Positions 26,896-54,926 of a stretch of DNA of 64,000 bases are shown in pieces. The notes under the pieces were generated by a model. The model made no database searches and had not been told where the DNA came from. It was given only the letters and a program-made list of their open reading frames with translations. Both the position numbers and the translations under genes were made by a program. The first letter of the stretch is position 1; the number at the start of each line of letters is the position of its first letter. This DNA comes from Dimorphilus gyrociliatus (lineage: Eukaryota; Animalia; Annelida): positions 2,404,504 to 2,468,503 of the forward strand of contig CAJFCJ010000003.1 of NCBI GenBank assembly GCA_904063045.1, given 5' to 3'.

Positions 26896-27750
26896 ATGTC
26901 TCGGTTGAGAACAGCTTACCAATTTAGCAGAAGATATACTGGAAGAGTGAAAGCAGTCATTTTGGATTGGTCTGGTACTACAGCTGATAAATATGTAATT
27001 GCACCAGCCGTAGTCTTTGCTCATGTTTTTGAAAAGGCTGGCGTTCCTATTTCGATGAGTGAGGCAAGAGAACCTATGGGAATAAGAAAAGATTTACATA
27101 TTGCGACAATTTGCAATAATCCTTCTGTAAGGCAAAGATGGTTTAATGCAAAAGGAAGGTATCCAAATCAGGGTGATGTTGAAGAAATGTACAAAAATTA
27201 CATTCCTGCTCAGCTGGAATGTCTACCAAAATATACTGATTTAATACCTGGTGCAGCTAAATCAATCAAGACTTTAAGAGACGGTTACGGTATAAAAGTT
27301 GGCTCAACTACGGGATTTAGCAGGCCAATGGTTGACATTCTTGTTGAAGGTGCCAGAAAACAAGGTTTGGATTTCGATGCTACAGTAGCTGGTGATGAAG
27401 TCATTAATGGTTCAAGACCCAAACCCTTTATGATTTACAAGAATATGGATTTAATGAATGTGCATCCAATCCAGAGTGTTATTAAAGTCGACGATACAAC
27501 ATCAGGTGTGGGAGAGGCTCTGGAAGCTGGATGTTGGGGAGTCGGGGTCGCAAGGTATTCCAACTATATGGACATTAACAGCTTTGAAGAAGAGGAAAAT
27601 TACACAAGGGAAGAGATCGAGGCTAGAACAGAAAAATCCAAACAGAAACTTAGAGAAACAGGAGTTCATTACGTCATTGATTCAATAGCAGAGCTACCAG
27701 CCGTCGTTGAAGATATTAACGAAAGATTGGCAAGAGGTGAACAACCTTAA
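26896..27750 (+). CDS. phnX: Phosphonoacetaldehyde hydrolase (phosphonatase, HAD superfamily), intronless, 284 aa
   Basis: Single ORF. HAD motif I ILDWSGTT; cap helix EPMGIRKDLHI with the Schiff-base Lys plus Met and His; motif II GSTTGF; SRPKP; motif IV KVDDTTSG.GEALEAGCWGVGV. An in-frame TGA shortly upstream fixes the start. Confidence 0.93.
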   Translation: MSRLRTAYQFSRRYTGRVKAVILDWSGTTADKYVIAPAVVFAHVFEKAGVPISMSEAREPMGIRKDLHIATICNNPSVRQRWFNAKGRYPNQGDVEEMYKNYIPAQLECLPKYTDLIPGAAKSIKTLRDGYGIKVGSTTGFSRPMVDILVEGARKQGLDFDATVAGDEVINGSRPKPFMIYKNMDLMNVHPIQSVIKVDDTTSGVGEALEAGCWGVGVARYSNYMDINSFEEEENYTREEIEARTEKSKQKLRETGVHYVIDSIAELPAVVEDINERLARGEQP

Positions 27751-28237: not shown

Positions 28238-29480
28238 TCATTTGCAATGCTGCAATTCATAGAGTTTATGGGCCTGTTTTCTTGCATCGTCAACGCCCTC
28301 ACAAATCTTTATCCAATTTTTAGGTATACAATTTATTGAATACGCTGCACCAGCAATAGCTCCTGCCATTGAAGCTATAGTATCTGTATCCCCGCCCAGC
28401 GATATAGAGAATAATATAGTCTCCTTAAATTTTTCTTCTGGTGATAAATTCGAGAATCTTTCTTTCGTCGTCCGTAAAAATGAATAAATAGCAGCAGGTA
28501 CGGAATTTAAGGCAGTTACATCATTTCCTATAGAATGGAGTTGTTGAATAAGATCGAATTATTACATGTAAAGAATAATAAACCTAATTTGGTAGCCACG
28601 TCTTCTTCACTTGTCTCATATTCCAACATTAACTGCCTGATTAATGTTATCTTTTCTTGATAAACTTTTCTATTTGCGAGTAAAATTAAATTATACGGAT
28701 ATTTCACGTAAAAAGGCAATTTACTGTTCACTATCCACTTCTAGGCTCTTTGCAAAGGTTTCTAATTTATCTAACAGGTCAGAGTCGTTATTTGGGTATT
28801 TTAAAGCCCATTTTACAGCTGTTGCTTCCAGGATGGCACCATTTATGCCAAATGGATGAGCGTGAGTAATTAAGGATATTTTTCTAACTAAATCCTTTAA
28901 GGAAGAAAAATTTTAATTTCAATACTAAACGGAAATAATTGAAAATTGTTCAATACTTCAAACTCTTTATTATCACTTTTTATTCCAAATAAGGAAGCTG
29001 GAGCTATTCTCATAGCTGCTCCATTTCCAAATGATCCCTGGCCACTATGTTGTTGTTTAGAAGGTGAAAATATTTCTTCTTCAGTGATACTCGCGTATTC
29101 TTTGGAGGAAAATATATTATTTAACTTGTGAAAAACTTCTCCGATAGTTGCTCCATAACCATAAGGTTTTCGTATATACTCATCAGTGAATCTATTTTCA
29201 AAATTGATTAGTTCTATTAGGTATAATTTCATATATATATACAAAAGTACTTTTTGGCTAAATCTATACAGTCCAATTTTTTCTTCTCTATTAGGGAAAA
29301 AGCCACCGATCTTGACATCGCGGTATCATCTGTATATTTGAATATACATGGTGAATTATATGTTTTTAACATTTTTTCCCTAGATGGAATAGGCGTAACA
29401 AATTCATATTCAGAACCCAAACAATCGCCAACTACGGCTCCTACTAAACTTCCAATAAATTTTTCTTCCATATCATTCAT
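28238..29480 (-). CDS. ADPRS: ADP-ribosylhydrolase ARH3, about 336 aa
   Basis: complement(join(28238..28527,28584..28669,28725..28894,28957..29191,29251..29480)) = 1011 nt, introns 55-62 nt. Motifs GAVVGDCLG, YTDDTAM, GSFGNGAAMRIAP, THAHP.G..GA, LGNDVTALNSVP.A.Y.F and GGDTDTIASMAGAIAGA. Confidence 0.95.
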
Positions 29481-36749: not shown

Positions 36750-39700
36750 TCAAACAATCCTCTTATAGATTCGCTGTTCGACAAATTGACAGAGGCAAGG
36801 AGCATTTTTAACATGCCTTGGTCTATGTGGAAGCTCAAGTTTTTTCGTTATTAACAAATTTATATATTCGCCGCTGAGGCTTAGCATCAGTTCTTCAGCT
36901 TGCGTCTGTAATTGATGAAACAATTGACGAAGAAAATATATTAATGACGTGGATGTAAACAAAATAAATGTATTTTACTCAAAGAAAAAAATACGCAAAG
37001 TGTTGTATATATATCTTTAGCATACACATACATATATTAGTGTACGTGCGATTATACATATATCTATAAACATATTTATGTAATTTATAGATATAATACA
37101 TATAGTATATATTGTATTTATATATATGTATATGTTAATTCACAAAAATAGTGTTTATAATATATATACAAAGAAACACATACAATTATATATTTATTAT
37201 TTATACTCGTATAAAAGAAAAGTATTTATATCATTGCGTGCTATACCATTATCATCAATGTCCAATAATCGATTTCATGTCCTTATGAAATATTGATTGG
37301 GTTATAAAACGAAAGGTTTAGGCCTAATTTGCCTTTACTTTTAACTTTTAAAAATATATTTAAAGAGAGAAAAAAAAACAAATATAAAATTTTATATTAA
37401 ATAGAAAAGTACGACTTAAGGTCGATATTAAAAACCTTTATAATATTTGAGATAAAGGATTCGTCGAATGAGGACAAGTAATATGTATTAATGAAATACT
37501 TTTTAAAAGTTTCATCTAAATATAGATGCTTTAATATGTCAAATAAATAGAAAAGTAAAAGAGATAAGATTCATTCTCTTCTTTTCTCCTAACAATAAAA
37601 AAGAATAATTAACAGTTTTTTCCTCTCTCTAAAAGCCCTTTAATCTTAAATACAATTGTACCAACCATCAGCGATCTATACATAAACTAAATAAAATAGA
37701 CTTAAAACAGCCTTGTTCATTATACTTGTATTAAATATGCACACTAATGTATTCTCATTTTACCTAAAATACTTGATATATATTAATATGTTCTTTCCTG
37801 ATTTTCTATTCTTAAGTAACGACTCTCTCTCTCTCTATAGTTAGTCATCTTAACTATTCCATTCCCACATCATTCTGTAACCTTCATTAAGAAGGTTATT
37901 ATTAAAACATAAAAAAATTCTATTCAAGCCGCACGACATCATTTGTTATTGTAAGAGGGATACTGCATAATACATTTGTCAACCTTAAAATAAAGCGATA
38001 ATTATTTTTAAATGGGTTTGTTAAAGAAGGGGAAAAAGGAACAAAAGAGAAAAGAAATAGGAGCGAAGAGAGAGAGAGAGAGGAAAAAAGGGAATGATAG
38101 GAAGAAAAGAAAAGATGATTAATTCCTCTCAAATGTTGGAAGGAAATGATAAAAAAAAGAAAATGTGTTAAATAGTATTGAAAATATTTTAATTCATCTG
38201 CTTGTTTAGTAGCGATTTTACATATACAATACTGTATATTAATATTTTATCTATGTTCATCTTGTTTTCTGGTGCTTATACTTTGTTAGAAAACATTTTT
38301 TATAATCATTTAAACTAAGCAATTATAACACTTTTAACGGAAACTTTTTTGAAATTATAATAAGTCTCTCTCACTCTCTCTTCCTCTCTCTTTCTGCTCA
38401 TCTCTGCACATTTAATCTTAATTAATTGATACTAACCTGAACTGCTGCGTTAGTTTGTCCATTTCCGAGTACTTTTGTCCTATCGTTAGCAGCTTCCACG
38501 TCTAGGTCGTGGCCGTTGCATTCCGTATTGGACGCTCTATTAGAGTAAGACCTCTCTTCCATGGCCATAGTTAATTCTTGCAAGTAGGCCTAAAGAACAG
38601 AATTTTGTATCACATATAAGGATTATTTGTATGAGTACAGTTTGTATGTTAATAAAATGATGATTGGCAGTGAAAGAAAGAGCGAAAGGGAGAGTATGGG
38701 GAGGGGTGGAGAGACGGGGAGAAAAACTTGTTACTATGACTACAGAAATTTATGTGATTCGACTGACAATGGCGTGTCGGGTGTAATTACTAGCGAATTT
38801 AAACGGAAGCGTGGTGGCGAATCGTAATGTGATATTTATTGCGGTCTTGTTTATATGTATATTGACTTATTTATCTCAGCTCAAAAATTAACTAGACAGT
38901 ACAAATTTGGAGCGACATTTATTCTATCTAAAACTTTCACTTTTTTGATCAACGCTTTTCATTAAAGGTGTTTACTATGTCATCAACGTAGTACAAGTAC
39001 ACTCTATGAATATTTAAACTCGTATATTTTCTATTCCTTCTTTCTAAGATTCATCATAATTAATTCTTTTATTAATAACAAAAGAAAAACTGTCTACAAA
39101 AACAATTCGATAGAATAAAAAGAGAAATTTCTACTCTGTCTCCTCTTTGTTTTCTTTCCAATTTGCATTAATAGATTCAAGTCTTTTATCAAGAAAGAAC
39201 TTCTCTTCTCTTCAAATTGATTTTTCAGTTTTTCTATCTCATCTTGGAAACAGAAGGAAAGAAAAATCGAAAACAGTAAAAACCATAATTATGTGAAAAT
39301 GACGAGTTAACTGATTTAATGGCAATCATTATGTGAATCATTAAGAAAAATCTGACATTGTTTTTATTCATTATCTAAAATACATTTAAAGATTATTGTC
39401 TTTGATATCTCTTCTTTTATGGGAAGAGAACATGTTATCATTTTATATATATTTATAAATATAATACTATCCCCCTCGATAGGTGTCACTACTTGCACTT
39501 TGTTTATCTTTTACTTCCAAAAGGTTTATTCTTGTAAAGTAAATCGTTTAAGGAAAAAAACGAAATTGTCCTGAACTATAAAGATGATAAATAAACGAGG
39601 TTGATTACATTCTTAATCAAAGGGGAGCAAAGATGGCGCTATAGTGAAAAAACTAGCTCAATAGCCTATAATTTTGGCGTATGGAAAGAAATAGTGTATA

Positions 39701-42700
39701 GTATAAAGCTAAAATCAATGTAATACTTTCCAGATATTAACTAGGAGAAATTATTATCAAATGGCTAATAAATAAACTTACCAAACATGGTCCGAATTCA
39801 AAGTAGAATACATGCAGCTAATATGAAAAAAAGTTAAAGTTAAGGTTAAAACTTCCGATTATAAATAATATATTTTTTCTCTTTTCTCTCCTCTCTTTAC
39901 CATAAGTTAATCGATATTGTATTAGTGTATTGAACAGTGGGAGTTTTATCGAATGGCAATCGCCCCCGTCAAAGACCGTTGTTCATTAAATGGCTCTTTC
40001 TGATCTATTAAGTCGATAAAGCGCGGAGGCGAAAAAAATTGATGGGATTTATCAGATTTTAGAACATCGAAATAAAATAGAAAAAGGATACGTAATATTT
40101 GTTGCAGTCTGCTATACCCAAATTTTCAATACCCGCTAATAAGTTGTATTTAACTAGCGTGGAATTGACTTGAGTTAAGTGTTTGTAGGTTGCCTCTTTC
40201 ATCTGTAATAAAACGTTTTTTTCTATAATAAAGAGACAAAACAGGGTTAAACATGCCTAAAGAATTATAACATTATCACGTTATTTTAATATAGCCTATC
40301 CACTCTTTACATGCATATCTCTTTAACAATATCAATCTTTTCCTCTGATAAAACGTTGGACAAGTGAAAGGATAAAGATAGAGATTCGCGCCTATAAATA
40401 ATAAAAAGAATGAGAGATTTGAAAAAGGGGAAAAAGATTCTAAAAGGATAGAAGAATAGTTTTTTTGCTTTTATAGAGTGGAAAAGTGTCGAAAACTGCT
40501 TTGCGCTTAACTTAAAAAAAGCTATCAATTTATGCGGGGGGAGGAGGAAATTTACGTTAGAAGAGATATCGAGTAAAACGATAGTACTCAGTAATTGATA
40601 TAAAAATAAAATGGGTGAAAATAATTAGATGACTAAAAGCATTTTTCCCTAAAAAATATGTGCAAATCTATCCTATATTATTCTTATTATTTGAATGTGA
40701 TATATATAAGCTATATACAATATTCAGTCTGTACTATATATGCATTAATTACTGCAATCTCCAGTATAGTGTATATTCGCTATTCTGTGAAATTTATTGC
40801 ACTATTTTAACTGCAAAGTTTCTTCTACTGCCCCATCTCTCTTTTTATATAAATATATATCTACCAATTCTCTATCTCTCTCTCTCTTTCTGTTTTTCTC
40901 TCTTTATCTCTTCTCTCTGCCTCTTTCTCTTTTATATCTCCAGTCTTTCTTTCCAAGTCTCTCTTGCCTTGTCCGTCTCCATCCTTTTCGTCCCTACCTC
41001 TTTCTCTATTTTATCTGATGTCTTTTTTCAAACTCTCTATCTCTGTCCTGTATAATATCGATGAAGTAATCCGAAATGAATTAATAACGTATTCTTCATT
41101 ACAAATGCCCTCTAACGGTTCTTTTTCTATGTAAACAAAGCAGGCTTATATAATTATTTAGCACTATTTCTGGCATTCCCGTGATAATTTGAGAAGATTT
41201 AACTCAGAGAGATAGAGAAACATGGAGCTATGGAGAGAGAGGCAAACAGATAGACAGACGAATAGAGATACACAAAGGGGAAAAAAGGGATATAAACAAT
41301 GGGATAAAGTGGGAGTTAAGGCTAGAGAAGAATGTAAATATGTAAATCTGAAATATCATTATTGTTAATGATTGATACGGAATATTTATATAGTTTATTT
41401 ATTGATAAATTAATAAGCATGCAAGGAAGAAATGATAAAAATCGTTGAATTTATCTATGACAATTTGTGAGGATCTATTTTTTTTCTCTTTTATTCCCTG
41501 TAGATAATTTAAGATAATACGAACCTTACGCCTAGAGATATGTGTGATAACCATATAAACGGTAAGAATGCACAACCAGACTATAGCACCATGAACAATT
41601 TCAACCCCTGCTAACCCAGTGGATTTGGGAAGAAAGAAACGCTCTATGGCTGGTACGAGTGTTAGACAGAGTAGCAATAATATGCCGAACGTTACTATTG
41701 CCAAAGGCATATTATAGCACCAAACGTGACAAGTAAATTTAGCATCCGACATTAATTCGTTCACAACATCCTGCCACTCGTCGATTGGTATCTATTTTGA
41801 AGGATATATATTTTTAAAACAGACGAAAAGTTCATAGGTGATTTCTTAATTAAGGATACAGAGAAGATGAAAAGGGCAAATAAGCTTAACTATTAATTAA
41901 TTTAATAGAATTTGTAGAATAATTTAACCTGTATTCCATTTAGTGGCAACTCTTCCGGAAGTTTATCGGTTTCGATTAATTCTCTACCGCAAAACCGCCA
42001 CCGAGATTTAATGCTGACTAACAGATGTCCCGTTTGCAAATCTGCAATTGTCGAAAAGAGAAAAATAGTTGGCTAGCTGTGCAACAACGATAAGTTTAAT
42101 GCGATCGTCTTTACAGGCGGAAAAATACGATTACGCAATTTGCGAATTTGATATGTGTGTATCTGTGATATTAGTATATAATATATTAAATATCTAAAAC
42201 AGTCTTTTAGGTATAAAAACATAAGAAGTAGATAACCTAGAAAACTACTTGTCATCTCAACGATCTTTTTTTCCTTCGAGATCTACGAAAAGTGCATAGA
42301 CTGAAACTTCTTGTTGAAAAGAATTTCACTTAAATTTTCTGTCATTATTTTCTTAAAAAAAAGTCAATCAAGTGCATAATGGAGGACAAAGTTCTCATTT
42401 TCCGCCCCTGTCCATAATCTTGTCATATTTTTTTTTTGCTTATGACCCTCTCTATTCTCTTCTTTTTCATCCAATAAGCTTTTTATTTGAAAAAATTAAA
42501 AAGATTACACTTATAATCGTTGTCTTCCCTCGATCGTGTAATATCTGACACAAAGTTTCCCCATATTACGGATATCTTACATTGTTAATGTTTTTGTAAA
42601 ATCCCCTTTTTATCTACGAATAAGAAAGGCTTCTAAATTCCAAAGAGAAACAGTATTGGCTTATTTTATCTATTGATAATTCTTTCAGTCTCTTTTCGAT

Positions 42701-45700
42701 TTTTGTCTTCATCACATGTTAAAGCTACTTTTCTTGCCAAACTAGGTTTTTTGTAACGTATAATTATAGATACTGTATGTATGAATATTTACTATTCTTT
42801 CTTTTTTGGAGATGGGAGGAAATTTAGTTACTATTTTCTTCTCTCATCCCCCTAGCAGATAAAGAGAAGCCTCCCACTAGGCAAACTTTCGCTTAATCGC
42901 CGCCAAATCCAATTTTCATCAAAACCTCAAATATAAAATCGTCCCAAGTATAAAATAAGATTATTTAACGTACCGCTGCTTACTCCTAGCATAGATATCG
43001 AACCAGATATTAAAGTTTGTTCAGTTGTTGGCGTCTCGGCTGTTGAAATACAATTGAATTAATAATAATTATAAAGTATAATTAAGTCTAATCAATGTAA
43101 ACAGATGAGATTTTATTAAAAAACAGAGGGATTTTCCCAACAAAGTTCAAGGTTGTATTTATATATTATGATATTAACTATTGCATGACGTATTTATACA
43201 GTATATTTAGGAAAAAGGATGAATTAAGGACCAATCGAATATGTGTAAAAGTGTTGAATAAAAATTAATTTTCATGATTAAGTGGCTTAGTAAGGAAAGA
43301 GAAATTAAGAGGATTAAAAGAATATATAGGCGATTAATCTTTTAAAGTATTCGCTGCTAACGTTTTTCAATAAAACCGTTCAATCATACTAAACCACCTT
43401 TTATACCTTTCGTTTAATTTAATTGATGTGATATAATTAATTTATAATCATAATGAATAAGATAGTCTAAGTATTATCTTCCAAGAAAATAAGGAGAAAA
43501 TCGTAACGTCATTAATTTGTAAAGTAGAAAATAAATTAAAGAATATCGAATGAGTTTAACCTACTCGTCAGAGACTTATCTTACGTGTTTAGAATAAATA
43601 TGAGCTATTTTGATGTTTATAAAGATCTGGATCAATTTTTTTCGTCTCTCGTAAAGACGCCACATTATGTAAAAATTTCTCTACCGTTTAATCAGGGACG
43701 CTTATTTTGTATTCTCAATTTGGAAGACATTTCTTTCCTTTCTCAAGATTTTTTTAGCTGTTTGTCTTTCGGAAAGTTACTTTGTTTTTTTTTTGCTTAT
43801 ACTTACAACCAGTGCAGATAGCATTAACAAGTTTCCACCACCAATCCTTTTCAAATGCCGCGTCTATACACCTGAAATCGGCAAGTGACGCCGGTAAGTC
43901 ACATTTCTGCAGTCTAACTACTAAAGCATCATTGTTGGTGAATAATCTTTCAACCAATATCCAAGTTTTGTTTAAAAAATCAGGAGAAATGACTACAACC
44001 GATCTTAGAGATTTCTTCATACCATTCTCAATAGCTTCAGAGGAATAAGGTTCTGACGGATCAAGATCTCTCTCGGATGAACAACAGCGTAAATTGCAGG
44101 CTTCCAATTTATTAATAACAGATAATACCCAATCCCTATCGTTATCATCATAGATGAAGAACGCATGATATCTTAGGTTATTTGTGAGGAATGGAAGACG
44201 TAACTGTATAGAAATAAAGATATAGGATTTAATCGTTGGAAGAAAATAGTAATTTTTTTAATTCCAATCCTTCTGTCCATTTGACCCTCCCTTCTCAATA
44301 GTTGAGAAGTAATCGAGATAAGAGGGAAATTTAGCGTACGAAATGTCTTACGAAGGGGGTTTTAGCGTCTACCCAGCATTTGGTTTCAGCCTATTGCTGA
44401 GTCTACTGAGACCCCTCTCATCGTACGAGTGGCGGTTGACTTCAAAGCCTCCCTTAGTCGCTAAAACCTGATTCAATTGAATCCAAAACGTCTTAAAAAC
44501 AATTGTTTTCTTCTGTTTGTAAAGTAAACTCAAATTCTAAATAATCCAAGAAAAGTAAGCTAAGTCTAAGAATTCACTAAATAGTTAAGTCCTATTGAAA
44601 AGGGGGATAAGATCTTCATTTTCTCAAATTTTCCATTTTTGCACGAGTGTTGGTAAACTAAATTCGTTACTCTGATTAACTGAACGTGAAAATGCAGGTA
44701 ATTCAATCCCGAAAAATGGCTTTAAACACTTCTAAAGTTCTTTTTAAGATAGACCTTTTGATGAAAAAAACTGGAAAGCAGTTGTAAATGTTAAAGGGTA
44801 CACTGGCTTTAAAAACCGAGTTGGATAGACGACAGAAATCGAATAAGAGCCCTCTTTTTGTAAGGGTAAAAATATATGCGGATCTAGGTACCCTGTACAG
44901 CTGTTGTAGAGTGGTAAGAATTGATCGGTTATTGGTAAAAGATACTTTTTATTCTTTCTCCTATTTTATTTTTAAATGAGTTTTATATAAAGAGATTTTT
45001 AAAGCTTCAATTAGATTTCTATCTTTTGATCTAAATCATCAAAGAAACATTCGTTAAAAGTTTAAAATTATACAAATTTATTCATAATTAATATTTAAAA
45101 CAATAGCAAGCGAAACTTGTTATTGCCTTAGGAATTCTTTTTACCAATAAATAAGACAACCTTCTTTCCAGGTAATAATTATAACTGTTTCTGATAATGG
45201 CTGTTACCTTAATTTTTTAAACTTGAGTCCTTTTCTGAAAACTACGTAACACATGAGACATAATTTCATAATCTCAAACTAGTATATATTTTTCCCTCTT
45301 ATTAAATTGGCGCTCGTATTTTTCTTATTTAACTAGTAAGAAAGTTAATAGGGGGCTAAAATGTTATATAGCCTCTTACGTAGCCAACGGCAACGATTTT
45401 CTTCATCTTTGAATTCCCAGTCTCCACACTACTCCCTTCCTCCCTCTTTCCCTCCCTCACTCCTCCCACTGTCTTTTTCTACGCACACCCTTTTTCTCTC
45501 TCGTTCTTTTTTTATATTGGTATATTTTCCTTTCTTTTCACGCTTGCTTGTTTTCTTCCATTCGATCCCTCCACCCCTTAGACGTTCTGTCTCATTTTGT
45601 CTATCAAAGTCTTTTTAACGTAACGTACAGGATTATCTATAAGAAAATTACGCGTCTTAATTGACAAAGATGCTCTTGCGTTTTCTTCGAGCGTAATTAA

Positions 45701-48556
45701 TATATAATATCATCTTCCTAACTTTTACTGTAATTCATATTATATCTTGACCTTTTGAAAAAACTCGTCGCAGAAGTTCTAATAGTGCTACGCTCAATAA
45801 GTGTACCAATTTTTGGACATTTCTTTAATTAGTATTTGTATGTACCGTATTTCAATCAATTAATTTAAATTTCATTCGCAGAAATAAACTAGAGAAACAA
45901 ATTTTTATCAGTTGGTAAAAGTGAATGGAAGATGACTATAGAAAGAGAAAATGAGAGGAGGAAAAGTCTATAACCTTGGCTCCTGTTTTTTCTTTTTAAC
46001 TAGAAATAGTATATTTCCGAGTTGAATTTCTTCTTTAGAAGCTCGATTAGAAGAGGAAATGAAAATATTTGAAAATTTTGAAACTAAAGTAGTCTATCAA
46101 TTAGTTAGAAAAACATTTAAAACAAATAAAAAATCAACGCAAAATAATGACAAACTGTCAAAAGTCTGAGCAGGAAAGAGTTCTGATTGTATTTACACCC
46201 ATAGGCTATATCAATCATTCAAACCATTCATTCATTCTCCCACTCTTTTCGTATTTCATCAAAGAATCACACTTAAAATTCTTGCCGTTCTCCTTTCATG
46301 ATTTTTCTTCACAATGTATTGTTCTCAGAAATGGAATTAACTGTGGGAAATCAGTCGTGGGAAACAAGAGAGATTCGGTCCTAAGACAGTAAGCTTTCCA
46401 GAAATCCCTAATTACTTTTATAAATACTTTACCTCCCCTACAGAAATCTTCCGCTATCAAATTCTTTATGTAATAAATAAACTTGAGGAAAAATGTTATT
46501 CAAATGAATAATTAATTATTCATAAATATTAATTAAATTTATAAGGAAAACTTTTTGTCTTGGGTTATTGTTGACAAACAGCTAAATTAGATTTACTATA
46601 TAAAATTAGTAATTTATCTATAAATTTAAAAGGTTACAGCCTCTTTTGCCCTAGTCTCCTTTTACTCTCCTTTCCTTTATCCTCTTTGCTCCTTCACCTC
46701 ATTTTACATTCTTATAAATAATTCATGAAAAATTTTCTTTTACTTATCTAATAAATATATTTCAACTACAGGAAACTATATATAATATAGTTCGAATATT
46801 CGATTTTGCAGTTTGGCACTATCAACTAGATTAAGGACAAACTATTTAGCAATTTTTCAATGACTTTTGCAAGTTCCTCTATTATTATTATTATTATTAT
46901 TATTATTGTTATTCGACCTTGAAAATTTATTACCATTATTCAAATCCCAACTGGAACATATTTACCCACATTTAATTTGATATTTATAGTCTTAGACAAA
47001 CAATGTATGCAGTGCACATACACATCATAAGTATATATATAATATTGAGTGTACGTGTCCTGGAGCTATAACATTATGACGCAATATATTTAACTTTCAC
47101 TAAAGATTTCAATCACTACATGTGTGTATTGAAAAAAAACTGATAATTACAAACCATCCGATTCTGTTCCACCCTCAAACGAATAAATGCATTGTAACGG
47201 TTTAGAATTTATTATCGATTTGTATTATTCTACTTTCTGATGGAAGGTTTGATAACGAAAAAGAGTAAAAGGAAATAAAAGGCTTCTATTTTTTCTTTCT
47301 AAATAATAACTAGATGGAACCCTAAAATCATATGTTCTTATTTATTATTAATACGTGGAATAGTAACTCTTTCAAGTTTGTCCCATCTGTCTGAGTGTTT
47401 ATTGAAATATCGGTATATATCAACTATCAGACTTAATTACATAAAAGATTAAACCTGACCCTATTAGTATTACCTGTTTATATTTATATACATATAAATA
47501 TATATATATATATATATACAGTATACATTTATATAGTATATCTTATAGAATAGTTTGTTTTTATCTGATTTGTCTCTGTTTTTTTTTCTTTTTTTTTACA
47601 AAACTTCATAAAAAACAACGATTAAACATTTCGAAAACAAAAAAAAAAATAAAAATAAAATGGGAACACAAACATAACAAAAACACAACAAAAAGAGAAA
47701 AGAATTCTTTATTATCTTACTAATTGATATGTGAGTGTTGGAAATATATTAATAGCTAAATAATTATTCGTCTGCTATTCGGTTCTATTTTATTTTCACA
47801 AATAATTAATTTTGTAATATACTCTTCTTTATTTTTTTTCTATTATCGATCAATAGAAGAAACTAACAAATTAGCAATTGAAAATTTTAATAGATAATAA
47901 TGTTTCTTTCTCTCTTTTTGCGGTTGTTAAGGGATTTACTGCTAATTAGTAGGAGAATCTAATAGATTAATAGATAATAGATATATATATATATACTCTT
48001 TAATGAAATTATTTATTGCTTTTCGTTTTTATCGATAGGTTAGGGATGAGTATCATACAAGGTGTGAGATTCAGTTATACAATTCCTTTGTAATTTTAAC
48101 ATTATTGTGCATCAACAGGTTAGTCTATCTCTTATATTTATAGTATATTAAAATACATATATGAACGCTTGAATAGACGTATTGGCTCTTAGCCAAACGT
48201 ATAATTAATTCTCGCTCTAAATAATAAAAGAAAATTATTGTATAAACTCGTACCTTTCCTGGCATCTTCAGACCGGAGTTAGGACGGAACGGAAAGTCCA
48301 AGTTGAGCGTTAATTTCGAACGTAGTTGCTTAGTAGATTCCGAATTTGAGATAAAAGTCGATTCGATTTCCTTTTCTACATCTTCGTTTTTAGAGTCTAA
48401 TCTTTCTAAAGATAGATTTTCAAATGTCTGCCATTCCTTTTCATCCGTATTATCCATGTCTGATTTCAAAGCTGTATATTTACACTGCACGGTGTTCGAA
48501 TTGTCACTGGCTATCGAATTCATCGACAGATGGCGTCGTGGAGATAGAAGAGCCAT
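36750..48556 (-). CDS. TIR-domain + TMEM268-like membrane protein, 8 exons, about 511 aa
   Basis: complement(join(36750..36905,38437..38589,39782..39817,40092..40202,41525..41791,41929..42041,43807..44203,48254..48556)) = 1536 nt; all introns GT-AG, phases 0,1,0,0,0,0,0 consistent. TIR: YHAFFIYDDNDRDWV, CCSSERDLDP, VVVISPDFLNKTWILVE, WWWKLVNAI. TMEM268-like: GIQIPIDEWQDVV, two hydrophobic helices, VNSTLVKYNLLAGI, HVFYFEFGPCL, AEELMLSLSGEYINLL and RHVKNAPCLCQFVE. Confidence 0.82.
40860..41050. repeat. CT-rich low-complexity tract in an intron
   Basis: Imperfect (CT)n/TCTT repeats; source of spurious ORFs 40660..41055 and 40797..41018. Confidence 0.75.
46881..46907. repeat. (ATT)9 microsatellite
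   Basis: Directly read. Confidence 0.9.
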
Positions 48557-52312: not shown

Positions 52313-54926
52313 CTAACGGTTCGAAGTTAGAGAAATGGTCTTCGTTGGAGAATCGTTTTTTGTCTGAGCTATTTCCGTTTGAATTAGTCTTCTATCCTGC
52401 AGGGTTGGTAGTGATTTTCTGGGCGTCAAATATTCTGTATGGAAATAGAAATCATTAGGAAAAAGTAATGTCTAAAGAGTCACTAAGGGATGGCAAAAAA
52501 AGAGGGAGAGAGAAAGAGAGAAAAGAAAGAAAAAAAAGAGTAACTATCTGACTGAGTGAATATGTGAGAGAGTGAGAATGGTAAGGAATGGAAAGAAATT
52601 CAGCACATAAAGTAAAAAAAAAAGCTATAACTGAATACAAGATCTGCATGTCAAGTTAAATGATCAACTGTTCTCAAGCTATTCGTTGAAGTAAATGAGT
52701 TGCATTGTTTGAATTGTCTATGCGCAAATGATCAATTAGAAATATATAGGATGATAGTCAAAATAAAATTGATTTAATTAACTATTTAATAGTTGTTCAT
52801 AATTTCAGTATTGAGTATATAATAGCAACTTTTTTTATACAATAAAAACGGTTCTACGCTACGAGGGGTTACTATTTTTATCGCTAGTTTAAACAGAAAT
52901 AACTCTATTTATATAATGTATTCGGCTAGATCTCTAGAATAATATAATCTAGCACCCCTCGACACTTAGGCCATCTTTCGGTTGAAATCATTAGAAAAAC
53001 AATATGTTTTCTATCGAAAATATACAATATACAATATATACAGTATATATATATATATAATATTGATATTTATAAATATAATATAGGGGAACAAGTGTAA
53101 TAAATTAACTACGTAAGCGTTAAAAATAATTACCTTTTTGTTTTTCTGCGATCGTGAAAGTATCGGAAATTGCTATTATTGTACTGGATTGAGAATTCCA
53201 GTAGGCCAATCTGTATTTTCTATTTTCAGCTGGTTTCATGAGCATTTTACGTGGGAATGATAATTTGATGACTCTAGTATTCGTTCTTCTTACGCTCTTA
53301 TCGATTATAGCATTTTTAATATATGAATAGCATAAATAATCGTTTCGGAAATTTTTTGGGCCATTAGTATATACACCTACCCAATCCCATTCTGTTAATT
53401 CTACGAGATTCGTATTCACTTCCATAGTTATAATGATGTAGTAAGAGAAGTGTGAAGTTACCGATTGAACGAATTTTAGGCTATAATTATAAACAATAAA
53501 AATGAATAATTCAGGTCAATTGGATGTTATTCCTATTATTATTATTTTTTAAGTTTTTAATTATAATAAAAAAATTAATTATTAGCGAAATTTGGATAAA
53601 AATGTAGCCTAAAACCGGTCATTTTTAAAAGCTTTAAAGAAAAAGTAACCAGTAACTGGTCTATGATCGCTCTGCTTCAGATATGGATGAGATTGGTAAG
53701 AGCCTGCTTTAACCTTGAGAAATGAATCTTCTTTACTTAATTTCCAGATAATTCTATCAGTCCAAGCCGGTTTTCTTTGACTTTTTATATCGTAATTATC
53801 TGTTTTTGGATCAAATTTATAAGTTGGACGGAAATTTATGGGAGCCTCTTTAAATCCATTAAAAGCTGTTTTCAAAGTTCTTAATTTAGTTAATTGATCA
53901 TACTTTAGTAGTGTCTGAAATTCTTGTTTTTTTACATGATCCAAAGCGACTTCGGTGCTTATTTTATCTAATCTAAAGTTCAAATCTCCCATCCAAAATA
54001 TGTAATCATGTTCCATTATATTCTTAGCTGACTTATCCTTATTAACATTGAAAATTAATGTAATAACACACCTTTAACTTTTAGGATATATTTAAAATTA
54101 CTTTAAATTGCTGGATACTTGTTATCAGATTGTAATCGTTAACTCGAGATTTAACATTAAATTGATGGGCGGTTAAGTGTGAATTAACGCAACAGACGCT
54201 CACGCCAGCAAAGTCGAATCTTACTGTTGCAGCTCCTTTGGAACCTACTAAACCCATAAATTTTACTTTTGTACTGGTACCTTCAACATCACTCAAAAGA
54301 TGGAGACACTGCTCCTGAACAAAGACGGCTATTACCAAATTGTATAGTCTTATTTTTTTTATTAAGGTGTATTTAAAAGAATTCATTAAGTCCATTATTG
54401 CAATTGTCCACTTATCGTCTTGAATAGCATCCGTTACAACATTAACTTTGGTCTCTTGAAGAGATATAACAAATATAGACGGCCATTTTCTTTTTATATC
54501 TTTAAATCCTGACAGTAAATATATAAAAATGACGAAACTATTTATATAATAATTTGGGAAATTCTAAAATTGGGCCTACTTCCTAAAGATAAATCGAGAA
54601 AGGTATAAAATACATTAAAAATGTAACTAATAAAGCAAAAATAGTAATTATTTTGCATTAAATTTATCAGAAGATATTAAGTCGTCTTTTGTTTAATGCT
54701 TGCCTAACGCATTCAGTAATCCAGATTTTGCAGAATGACCAGAAGGTGGATCAGTTTGATGAACATTCCATGTAAATGCAAAGAGTGTATAATCCATAAA
54801 TTTCTCATAATAAATATTATTACAGTTAATACAATCACGAGATTGAAAAAAATCGTTGTGTTCTTTACAATGTATTGTCTCTTTAATGGATTCTAGATTA
54901 CGTAATTTATTCTGTGAGAAATTCAT
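52313..54926 (-). CDS. INPP5K: Inositol polyphosphate 5-phosphatase K/J-like (IPPc + SKICH), about 506 aa (463 aa if started at ATG 54797)
   Basis: complement(join(52313..52434,53134..53480,53616..54037,54102..54508,54704..54926)) = 1521 nt. Motifs FTWNV, SLQE, GSKGA..VRF, CCVNSHLTAH, HDYIFWMGDLNFR, PTYKFD, PAWTDRIIW and SDHRPV; SKICH motif WDWVGVY..DYLCY. Intron 1 is GC-AG (TAG/GCAAGC). Confidence 0.9.

Follow-up and report, generated by a model that had tools for sequence, protein, structure and literature searches.

Does the annelid Dimorphilus gyrociliatus carry a TIR domain and a TMEM268-like membrane module in a single protein, and if so, what might such a protein do? The question is raised by a gene in a 64,000-nucleotide stretch of contig CAJFCJ010000003.1 (assembly GCA_904063045.1, forward-strand positions 2,404,504 to 2,468,503), which we call the window and whose numbering is used below. 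An initial annotation, made from the letters alone, had described eight exons encoding a 511-residue, receptor-less TIR protein tethered to the membrane, possibly an NAD+-hydrolysing enzyme (NADase). We find that the gene, on the minus strand at 48556-36750, has nine exons in the corrected model and encodes 533 residues. One spliced RNA joins its TIR exon, of the TLR type by sequence and modelled fold, to a membrane module that matches the DUF4481/TMEM268 family.

Gene model and transcript evidence

The frame is open across the 1602 nucleotides of the nine-exon model, and every intron border is GT-AG (Table 1). The public run X1, whose kind is not recorded, was aligned to window positions 38400-44300, with contigs at 99% identity or more. 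The run is a transcriptome, as its contigs are spliced and its depth is 95-220 in exon bins and 0-12 in intron bins, with nil coverage across 43128-43521. Six joints were found: 43807|43039, 42974|42041, 41929|41791, 41525|40202, 40092|39817, and 39782|38589. Read on the plus strand, the parts skipped at these joints are bounded by CT..AC, corresponding to GT..AG on the strand of the gene. A loose contig end at 38437 runs on into letters that reverse-complement the start of exon 9 (36905). This chain of joints, with the loose end into exon 9, puts the TIR exon on the same spliced RNA as the membrane exon and the DUF4481 tail. The contig of the TIR exon itself breaks off 2-3 letters short of 44203, as expected of a unitig that reaches a splice border.

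The eight exons of the initial annotation all exist, with AG acceptors and GT donors throughout, and they translate to 511 residues, but neither the count nor the length stands, as a ninth exon of 66 nucleotides (exon 3) was missing. Likewise, the proposed splicing of the TIR exon to the TMEM268-like exons is borne out by RNA, but the direct 43807-to-42041 junction was not seen in the X1 transcript contigs, and exon 3 lies between the two. Joint depths on its two sides are 170 (43807|43039) and 220 (42974|42041), and the dominant transcript form in this run includes it. Comparison with the Capitella teleta protein CAPTEDRAFT_224550 leads to the same place. The 511-residue model is exactly 22 residues short directly after the TIR domain, and a weak tblastn match of the missing Capitella stretch at 43046-42972 points to exon 3. 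The exon is bordered by an acceptor ending in tttcaacag and a donor gtacgt, it fits in phase between the TIR exon, which ends in phase 1, and the exon at 42041, which starts in phase 1, and with it the linker aligns to the Capitella protein without a gap.

A minor joint, 39782|39242, was also present in X1 at a depth of 12 against ~190 for the main joint 39782|38589 (~6% of the signal). The contig of this minor form is unspliced from 39242 to 38561, which makes it an alternative acceptor or a partly retained intron. Compared with the assembly, one X1 contig carries one additional T behind the intronic position 42427.

Table 1 Features of the TIR-DUF4481 gene of D. gyrociliatus, in window positions.
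Feature	Position	Strand	Content	Match to Capitella protein	Further detail
Exon 1	48254..48556	-	variable, mildly acidic, Ser/Thr-rich N-terminus, 101 residues		start codon 48556-48554; donor GTACGA
Exon 2	43807..44203	-	entire TIR domain		transcript contig over 43807-44205, depth 170
BB-loop ERDLDP	44057..44074	-	within exon 2 TIR		
Glu186 codon of W-x-x-x-E (TWILVE)	43949..43951	-	within exon 2 TIR		
Exon 3	42974..43039	-	22-residue linker		66 nucleotides, phase 1 to 1; absent from initial annotation
Exon 4	41929..42041	-	start of DUF4481 module, ahead of membrane helices	tblastn, 47% identity, 1.7e-6	
Exon 5	41525..41791	-	two transmembrane helices (hairpin)	tblastn, 52% identity, 1.6e-23	hydropathy peaks
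Exon 6	40092..40202	-	post-membrane DUF4481 with invariant Asn	58% identity, 2e-13	
Exon 7	39782..39817	-	12 residues with invariant Cys (FGPC)	70% identity	
Exon 8	38437..38589	-	variable low-complexity stretch of module		joint 39782|38589
Exon 9	36750..36905	-	C-terminal DUF4481 motif Y..RH.....CLCQF	63% identity, 1.9e-17	stop codon 36752-36750

The N-terminus encoded by exon 1 has no Pfam match in a profile scan, and an in-frame stop lies three codons upstream of the ATG. It had been called acidic and Ser-rich, and the composition confirms a mildly acidic (16 Asp+Glu, 14 Lys+Arg), Ser/Thr-rich (21 Ser+Thr) stretch. At the other end, the last exon encodes RHVKNAPCLCQF, with CLCQF at 36797-36783.

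Selection on the gene can be read from a congener, in which a 30.9-kb contig (L001, run SRR23372228) is collinear with the window from ~53700 to 41050. Exons 1-5 keep their frame and splice sites in this contig, and exons 1, 2, 4, and 5 are free of indels. These four exons show 107 differences, distributed 12/6/89 over codon positions 1/2/3, with a ratio of non-synonymous to synonymous substitution rates (dN/dS) of 0.048. The ratio is 0.10 for exon 1 (93% identity), 0.037 for the TIR exon, and 0.05 for exon 5; exon 4 has 12 synonymous and no non-synonymous differences, and all five differences in exon 3 are synonymous. Identity is 86-93% in exons and 70-82% in introns. The gene is thus expressed and under strong purifying selection.

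The TIR domain and the DUF4481 module

Pfam scans were carried out on single exons and on orthologs. Exon 2 scored 2.1e-11 and 44.8 bits for TIR_2 (PF13676, cut-off 28) and 4.2e-10 and 40.1 bits for TIR (PF01582, cut-off 21.3), and its AlphaFold2 model has a predicted local distance difference test score (pLDDT) of 90.7 and a predicted template modelling score of 0.86. The complete TIR domain of the initial annotation is therefore well founded, and its two motifs, ERDLDP and TWILVE, are where they had been placed (Table 1). A Foldseek search with the model gave 28 PDB matches at E<=0.001, without exception TIR domains, in agreement with the flavodoxin-like fold of alternating strands and helices. 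The top matches are TLR1, TLR6, TLR10, Hydra TRR-2, MyD88, and TIR-STING, with template modelling scores (TM-scores) of 0.69-0.81 (0.77-0.81 for TLR1 and TIR-STING). TLR1 was matched at 1.3e-7 (TM-score 0.77-0.79), and SARM1 at 1.7e-3 (TM-score 0.57, 12% identity).

Profile comparison gives a similar order. A profile built from 27 TIRs of the family was searched against all PDB sequences, and ranks were taken from the best 60 matches. TLR15, TLR2, TLR1, TLR6, and TLR10 came first (6e-29 to 2e-25), followed by Hydra TRR-2 (3e-23), oyster TIR-STING (6e-23), MyD88 (3e-20), TIRAP (1e-12), AbTIR (3e-10), plant TIRs (about 1e-5 to 1e-8), and TRAM (4e-7). SARM1 was not among these best 60 matches. 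By profile and modelled fold, the TIR is classed as TLR1/2/6/10-like, then MyD88-like, with SARM1 distant. The nearest relatives are TLR and MyD88 TIRs, not the enzymatic ones.

How, then, should the conserved Glu be read? Within the family, the R, D, and P of the BB-loop R-D-x-x-P are kept in 20, 21, and 13 of the 27 TIRs, respectively, and both the Trp and the Glu of W-x-x-x-E in 24 of 27. In the alignment, the TIRs of TLR15, TLR2, and TLR1 have both the R-D-x-x-P BB-loop and the S-x-W-C-x-x-E region in common with the family. The Glu is present in most TLR TIRs, and TLR and MyD88 TIRs are not known to have NADase activity. Glu186 aligns with the Glu in SEWCKYE of human TLR2, and because this TIR carries Glu at the same aligned position, the residue is weak evidence for an NADase. 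The enzymatic argument of the initial annotation thus loses much of its force, and the alignments identify Glu186 as a family-wide, TLR-like feature rather than the mark of an enzyme.

The C-terminal half of the protein is assigned by profile matches to the DUF4481/TMEM268 family (PF14800, cut-off 25 bits). Exon 9 alone exceeds the cut-off, with 32 bits and 1e-7 for DUF4481 positions 246-293, which upholds the TMEM268 likeness stated in the initial annotation; exon 6 matches positions 107-156 weakly (E-value 0.016, 15 bits). The two hydrophobic helices previously noticed are confirmed by hydropathy in exon 5. The Capitella protein matches DUF4481 at 3.5e-22 and 79.6 bits over positions 2-293 of 293, together with TIR_2 at 3.2e-13. 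In an AlphaFold2 model of its module (pLDDT 81.6), a strand and short helices precede the membrane; they are followed by a helical hairpin (helices 90-115 and 123-170), a beta-hairpin, and three long helices that end in the conserved tail. No convincing match to this fold was found in the PDB (best Foldseek E-value 1.0), and VIA-align of the module against solved structures gave Z up to 7.6 for the helical hairpin only. Among ESM Atlas models, the fold matches arthropod DUF4481 proteins (TM-score 0.68) and a mollusc cluster, 98% of which carries TIR_2 (TM-score 0.55).

Family alignments show which parts of the protein are constrained. The N-terminus and the exon 8 stretch are not conserved. 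Within the module, an Asn, a Cys in an F/Y-x-x-x-x-C stretch, a Tyr, and the tail H-x5-C-x-C-Q are invariant, and this set suggests a functional site. The three Cys and one His of the module may form a metal site.

Family distribution and origin

The 533-residue protein is 46% identical to Capitella teleta CAPTEDRAFT_224550 over 526 aligned positions, tblastn with the Capitella protein is collinear across exons 2-9, and a maximum-likelihood tree places the two as sisters with 100/100 support. On these grounds, the gene is the ortholog of CAPTEDRAFT_224550. In the same tree, the echinoderms, two vertebrates, and a pair of Ptychodera proteins form separate starred clades, and the deep forks are left open. 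This pattern fits old vertical descent with local duplications. Two proteins that had been candidates for paralogs within this genome (P0010 and P0005) were rejected, as both trace to other ENA assemblies.

Searched with phmmer against 1.84 billion representative proteins, the TIR exon had 442 matches at E<=0.001, and the tail H..C.CQ[FY] is present in 17 of the best 150 of them. TIR and module were found together in Annelida (Capitella and a Ridgeia fragment), Nemertea (Lineus longissimus), Mollusca (several Haliotis paralogs and tandem arrays in the unionid mussels Sinanodonta and Potamilus), six Echinodermata (Asterias, Acanthaster, Diadema, Lytechinus, Strongylocentrotus, and Apostichopus), Hemichordata (Ptychodera), Cephalochordata (Branchiostoma lanceolatum), and Vertebrata (the teleosts Acanthopagrus latus and Eleginops maclovinus and the frog Ascaphus truei). 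The Capitella protein and echinoderm members such as Asterias rubens XP_033642929.1 and that of Strongylocentrotus purpuratus have the same order of parts as the D. gyrociliatus protein: a variable N-terminus, the TIR, the pre-membrane part of DUF4481, two transmembrane helices, the post-membrane part, and the RH..C.CQ[FY] tail. The differences from these members are of lineage-level divergence only. These comparisons identify the protein as a member of an old bilaterian family in which an N-terminal disordered region and a TLR-type TIR are fused to a DUF4481 module.

Two points here qualify the initial annotation. The teleosts and the frog share the architecture, so the component is not confined to invertebrates, and the architecture is not new to databases, where it is known under automatic names: the echinoderm members, which match DUF4481 over its full length at 1e-28, are called 'transmembrane protein 268-like' by NCBI. 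The gene belongs to an old family and does not represent a new kind of protein. That the family is poorly described is supported, as no paper in the literature searched links TMEM268, DUF4481, or C9orf91 with TIR; the ecTIR-DC families of Gerdol et al. 2017 could list it under a number, and papers citing Gerdol et al. 2017 gave no description of a family with a TIR and two transmembrane helices.

Vertebrate TIR proteins have been stated to be limited to TLRs, IL-1Rs, and five adaptors (PMC8662601), and the teleost and frog members do not fit this statement. The Acanthopagrus latus, Eleginops maclovinus, and Ascaphus truei proteins have the TIR and an H..C.CQY tail, with DUF4481 weak at ~17 bits, far below the echinoderm and annelid members; they may represent a fast-evolving vertebrate paralog that mammals lack.

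DUF4481 proteins without a TIR occur in Chordata and Arthropoda, in Atlas clusters for which PF14800 is the only family listed. Word-index searches of proteins, using either the Asterias module or an alignment of the module as query, returned only TIR-bearing proteins of echinoderms and unionids, and no TIR-less TMEM268. Human TMEM268 (C9orf91) has 342 residues, with transmembrane helices at 104-126 and 130-152 and DUF4481 at 38-328 (PMC6748091). Human and mouse TMEM268 thus resemble the D. gyrociliatus protein in having DUF4481 with two adjacent transmembrane helices; unlike it, the human protein has only ~37 residues ahead of DUF4481 and hence no TIR. It is plausible, as had been suggested, that TMEM268 once carried a TIR, because TIR-bearing forms are found in both Spiralia and Deuterostomia.

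Several observations concern individual members. Branchiostoma lanceolatum CAH1271012.1 and CAH1271011.1 are both named 'TLR2' in their source. A scan of CAH1271012.1 found only TIR and DUF4481 (60 bits), without leucine-rich repeats (LRRs), and it seems that the TLR-like TIR led to an erroneous name in the annotation. Sinanodonta woodiana has at least 7 members on one 112-Mb scaffold with near-consecutive locus tags (ACJMK2_020861 to 020892), which points to a tandem expansion in unionid mussels. One Sinanodonta protein (P0181, 412 residues) has no Pfam TIR match; either the model is partial or this copy may lack the TIR. On ENA contig ERZ25070786 (L006:1519-6121), a TIR exon 50% identical to that of Capitella lies 4 kb upstream of the first DUF4481 exon (69% identical to Capitella), and this is the same gene design in another organism, probably an annelid.

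Proposed topology and function

We propose that the two adjacent transmembrane helices form a hairpin and that the TIR and both halves of DUF4481, before and after the membrane, would all be cytosolic. The pre- and post-membrane parts are placed on the TIR side because they belong to one Pfam domain with two adjacent helices between them. Only ~10 residues would then be exposed on the far side of the membrane, and the protein would therefore be unable to sense extracellular ligands. In this arrangement, the protein would be a membrane-resident scaffold or regulatory TIR adaptor, whose TIR makes homotypic contacts with TLR/MyD88-type TIRs at the membrane of the hairpin and whose DUF4481 domain supplies a second activity, coupling the TIR to the role of TMEM268.

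Known systems share parts of this design. Compared with TLRs, the protein has no signal peptide, LRR ectodomain, or type-I topology, and its TIR is N-terminal to a hairpin anchor. The description as a receptor-less, hairpin-tethered TIR agrees with the gene model, which has no LRR or immunoglobulin ectodomain and a stop shortly before its start codon. Hydra TRR-2 and oyster TIR-STING (PDB 4w8g, 6wt6) are likewise invertebrate TLR-like TIRs without an LRR ectodomain of their own, but they differ in partner modules and topology; TRR-2 is a type I protein with a C-terminal TIR, and STING binds cyclic dinucleotides. TIRAP/MAL and TRAM are membrane-held TIR adaptors without an ectodomain, as proposed here. 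Their membrane attachment is by lipid binding or myristoylation, and Gln takes the place of the Glu, whereas the D. gyrociliatus protein has a transmembrane hairpin as anchor and keeps the Glu. It starts with Met-Ala-Leu, and with Ala as residue 2, it has no Met-Gly myristoylation site of the TRAM type. SARM1 has Glu at the catalytic position, as here, but is distant in sequence and fold, and its ARM and SAM domains are absent from the D. gyrociliatus protein.

Mammalian TMEM268 binds and stabilizes the integrin subunits ITGB4 and CD11b and shields CD11b from endolysosomal degradation (PMC6748091, PMC11169502). Tmem268 knockout mice are reported to fare worse in sepsis and to have raised pro-inflammatory cytokines, an effect attributed by the authors to enhanced TLR signalling (PMC11169502).

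Is the joined protein real, and is an adaptor the best account of it? An alternative would be that a TIR-only gene and a neighbouring TMEM268-like gene had been mis-joined. Prokaryote-style gene calls on related contigs do stop inside the intron after the TIR exon, and the junction first proposed for the two halves is missing from X1; set against this, canonical in-frame joints in the transcript contigs connect the TIR exon with the last exon in an unbroken chain, and the gene is collinear with full-length proteins of many phyla. The spliced X1 contigs rule this alternative out, and we give it next to no weight. If the protein is real, it might be a membrane-anchored NADase, in which clustering would bring the TIRs together and Glu186 would catalyse the hydrolysis or cyclisation of NAD+ as in SARM1 and plant and bacterial TIRs. 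Such an enzyme would account for the retained W-x-x-x-E, and some family members have weak Pfam ThsB_TIR matches, and the profile matched bacterial AbTIR; a catalytic role of this Glu is described for SARM1 (E642) and for plant and bacterial TIRs (PMC8295901). The ranking by profile and fold, with TLR1/2/6/10, Hydra TRR-2, and MyD88 nearest and SARM1 distant, argues the other way, as does the Glu of human TLR2, and we consider an NADase very unlikely.

The TIR could also serve as a decoy or negative regulator that sequesters TLR/MyD88 TIRs at the membrane without onward signalling, as SIGIRR does, with DUF4481 merely an anchor. A TLR-like TIR would suit this role, Pfam exon scans found no death domain or other downstream effector domain, and mice lacking Tmem268 show the cytokine phenotype that has been tied to enhanced TLR signalling. 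The mouse data, however, come from a TIR-less protein, and the DUF4481 module, with its invariant N, C, Y, H, and C.CQ set, is as conserved as the TIR, which argues for a function beyond anchoring. We therefore hold a pure decoy to be rather improbable. The explanation that we prefer overall is an expressed nine-exon TIR-DUF4481 gene with hairpin topology whose product is a scaffold or regulatory TIR adaptor, and we believe that it is probably correct. As for the function by itself, that of a hairpin-anchored scaffold or regulatory/signalling TIR adaptor, we incline slightly in its favour. Some points weigh against the preferred explanation. The joint between exons 1 and 2 lies outside the 5.9 kb covered by RNA (38400-44300); most members (24/27) keep a Glu where TIR NADases have their catalytic residue, leaving room for an enzymatic role; and the link to integrins would come solely from a mammalian relative without a TIR.

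Gene fusion is a classic hint that two modules act in one pathway. From the old and widespread TIR-DUF4481 fusion, DUF4481 would be expected to work together with TIR signalling. The immune phenotype of the knockout mice fits this prediction, which can be tested in mammalian cells and in fish. TMEM268 has been the subject of two functional papers, one on integrin beta-4 in cancer cells and one on CD11b and sepsis in mice, neither of which gives a mechanism. A broader and tentative idea, which we regard as doubtful at present, is that a TIR adaptor of the TLR type, built on DUF4481 and anchored by a hairpin, was already present in the bilaterian ancestor. Mammalian TMEM268 would then be its TIR-less remnant, DUF4481 would be a Toll-pathway module coupling TIR signalling to integrin trafficking, and the fish and frog members would be a vertebrate TIR class outside the accepted list of TLRs, IL-1Rs, and classical adaptors. 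For the D. gyrociliatus genome, the practical gain is a corrected nine-exon gene model backed by RNA.

The surroundings of the gene were also inspected. An intronless gene of the window matches CAJFCJ010000003.1 of assembly GCA_904063045.1 in every letter, and Capitella, the nearest named relative and likewise an annelid, is consistent with D. gyrociliatus as the source. Its 1.6-kb coding sequence extends across 11.8 kb, with introns of at most 4 kb and ~30% G+C. The D. gyrociliatus genome is said to be very compact with tiny introns, and against this description the locus looks atypical. The upstream neighbour on the same strand (~52845-53721, minus strand, via L001:1-590) encodes an inositol-phosphatase-type (Exo_endo_phos2) protein ending in SKICH; it is a separate gene and is kept in the congener contig. 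On the other side, a gene matching ADP-ribosylglycohydrolase (PF03747) lies at ~28238-28750 and beyond (minus strand, via L005:2343-2855) and adjoins an intronless HAD/phosphonatase-like gene at 26896-27750, ~8 kb from the end of the TIR gene. The proximity of a gene for ADP-ribose chemistry to a TIR gene is probably a coincidence.

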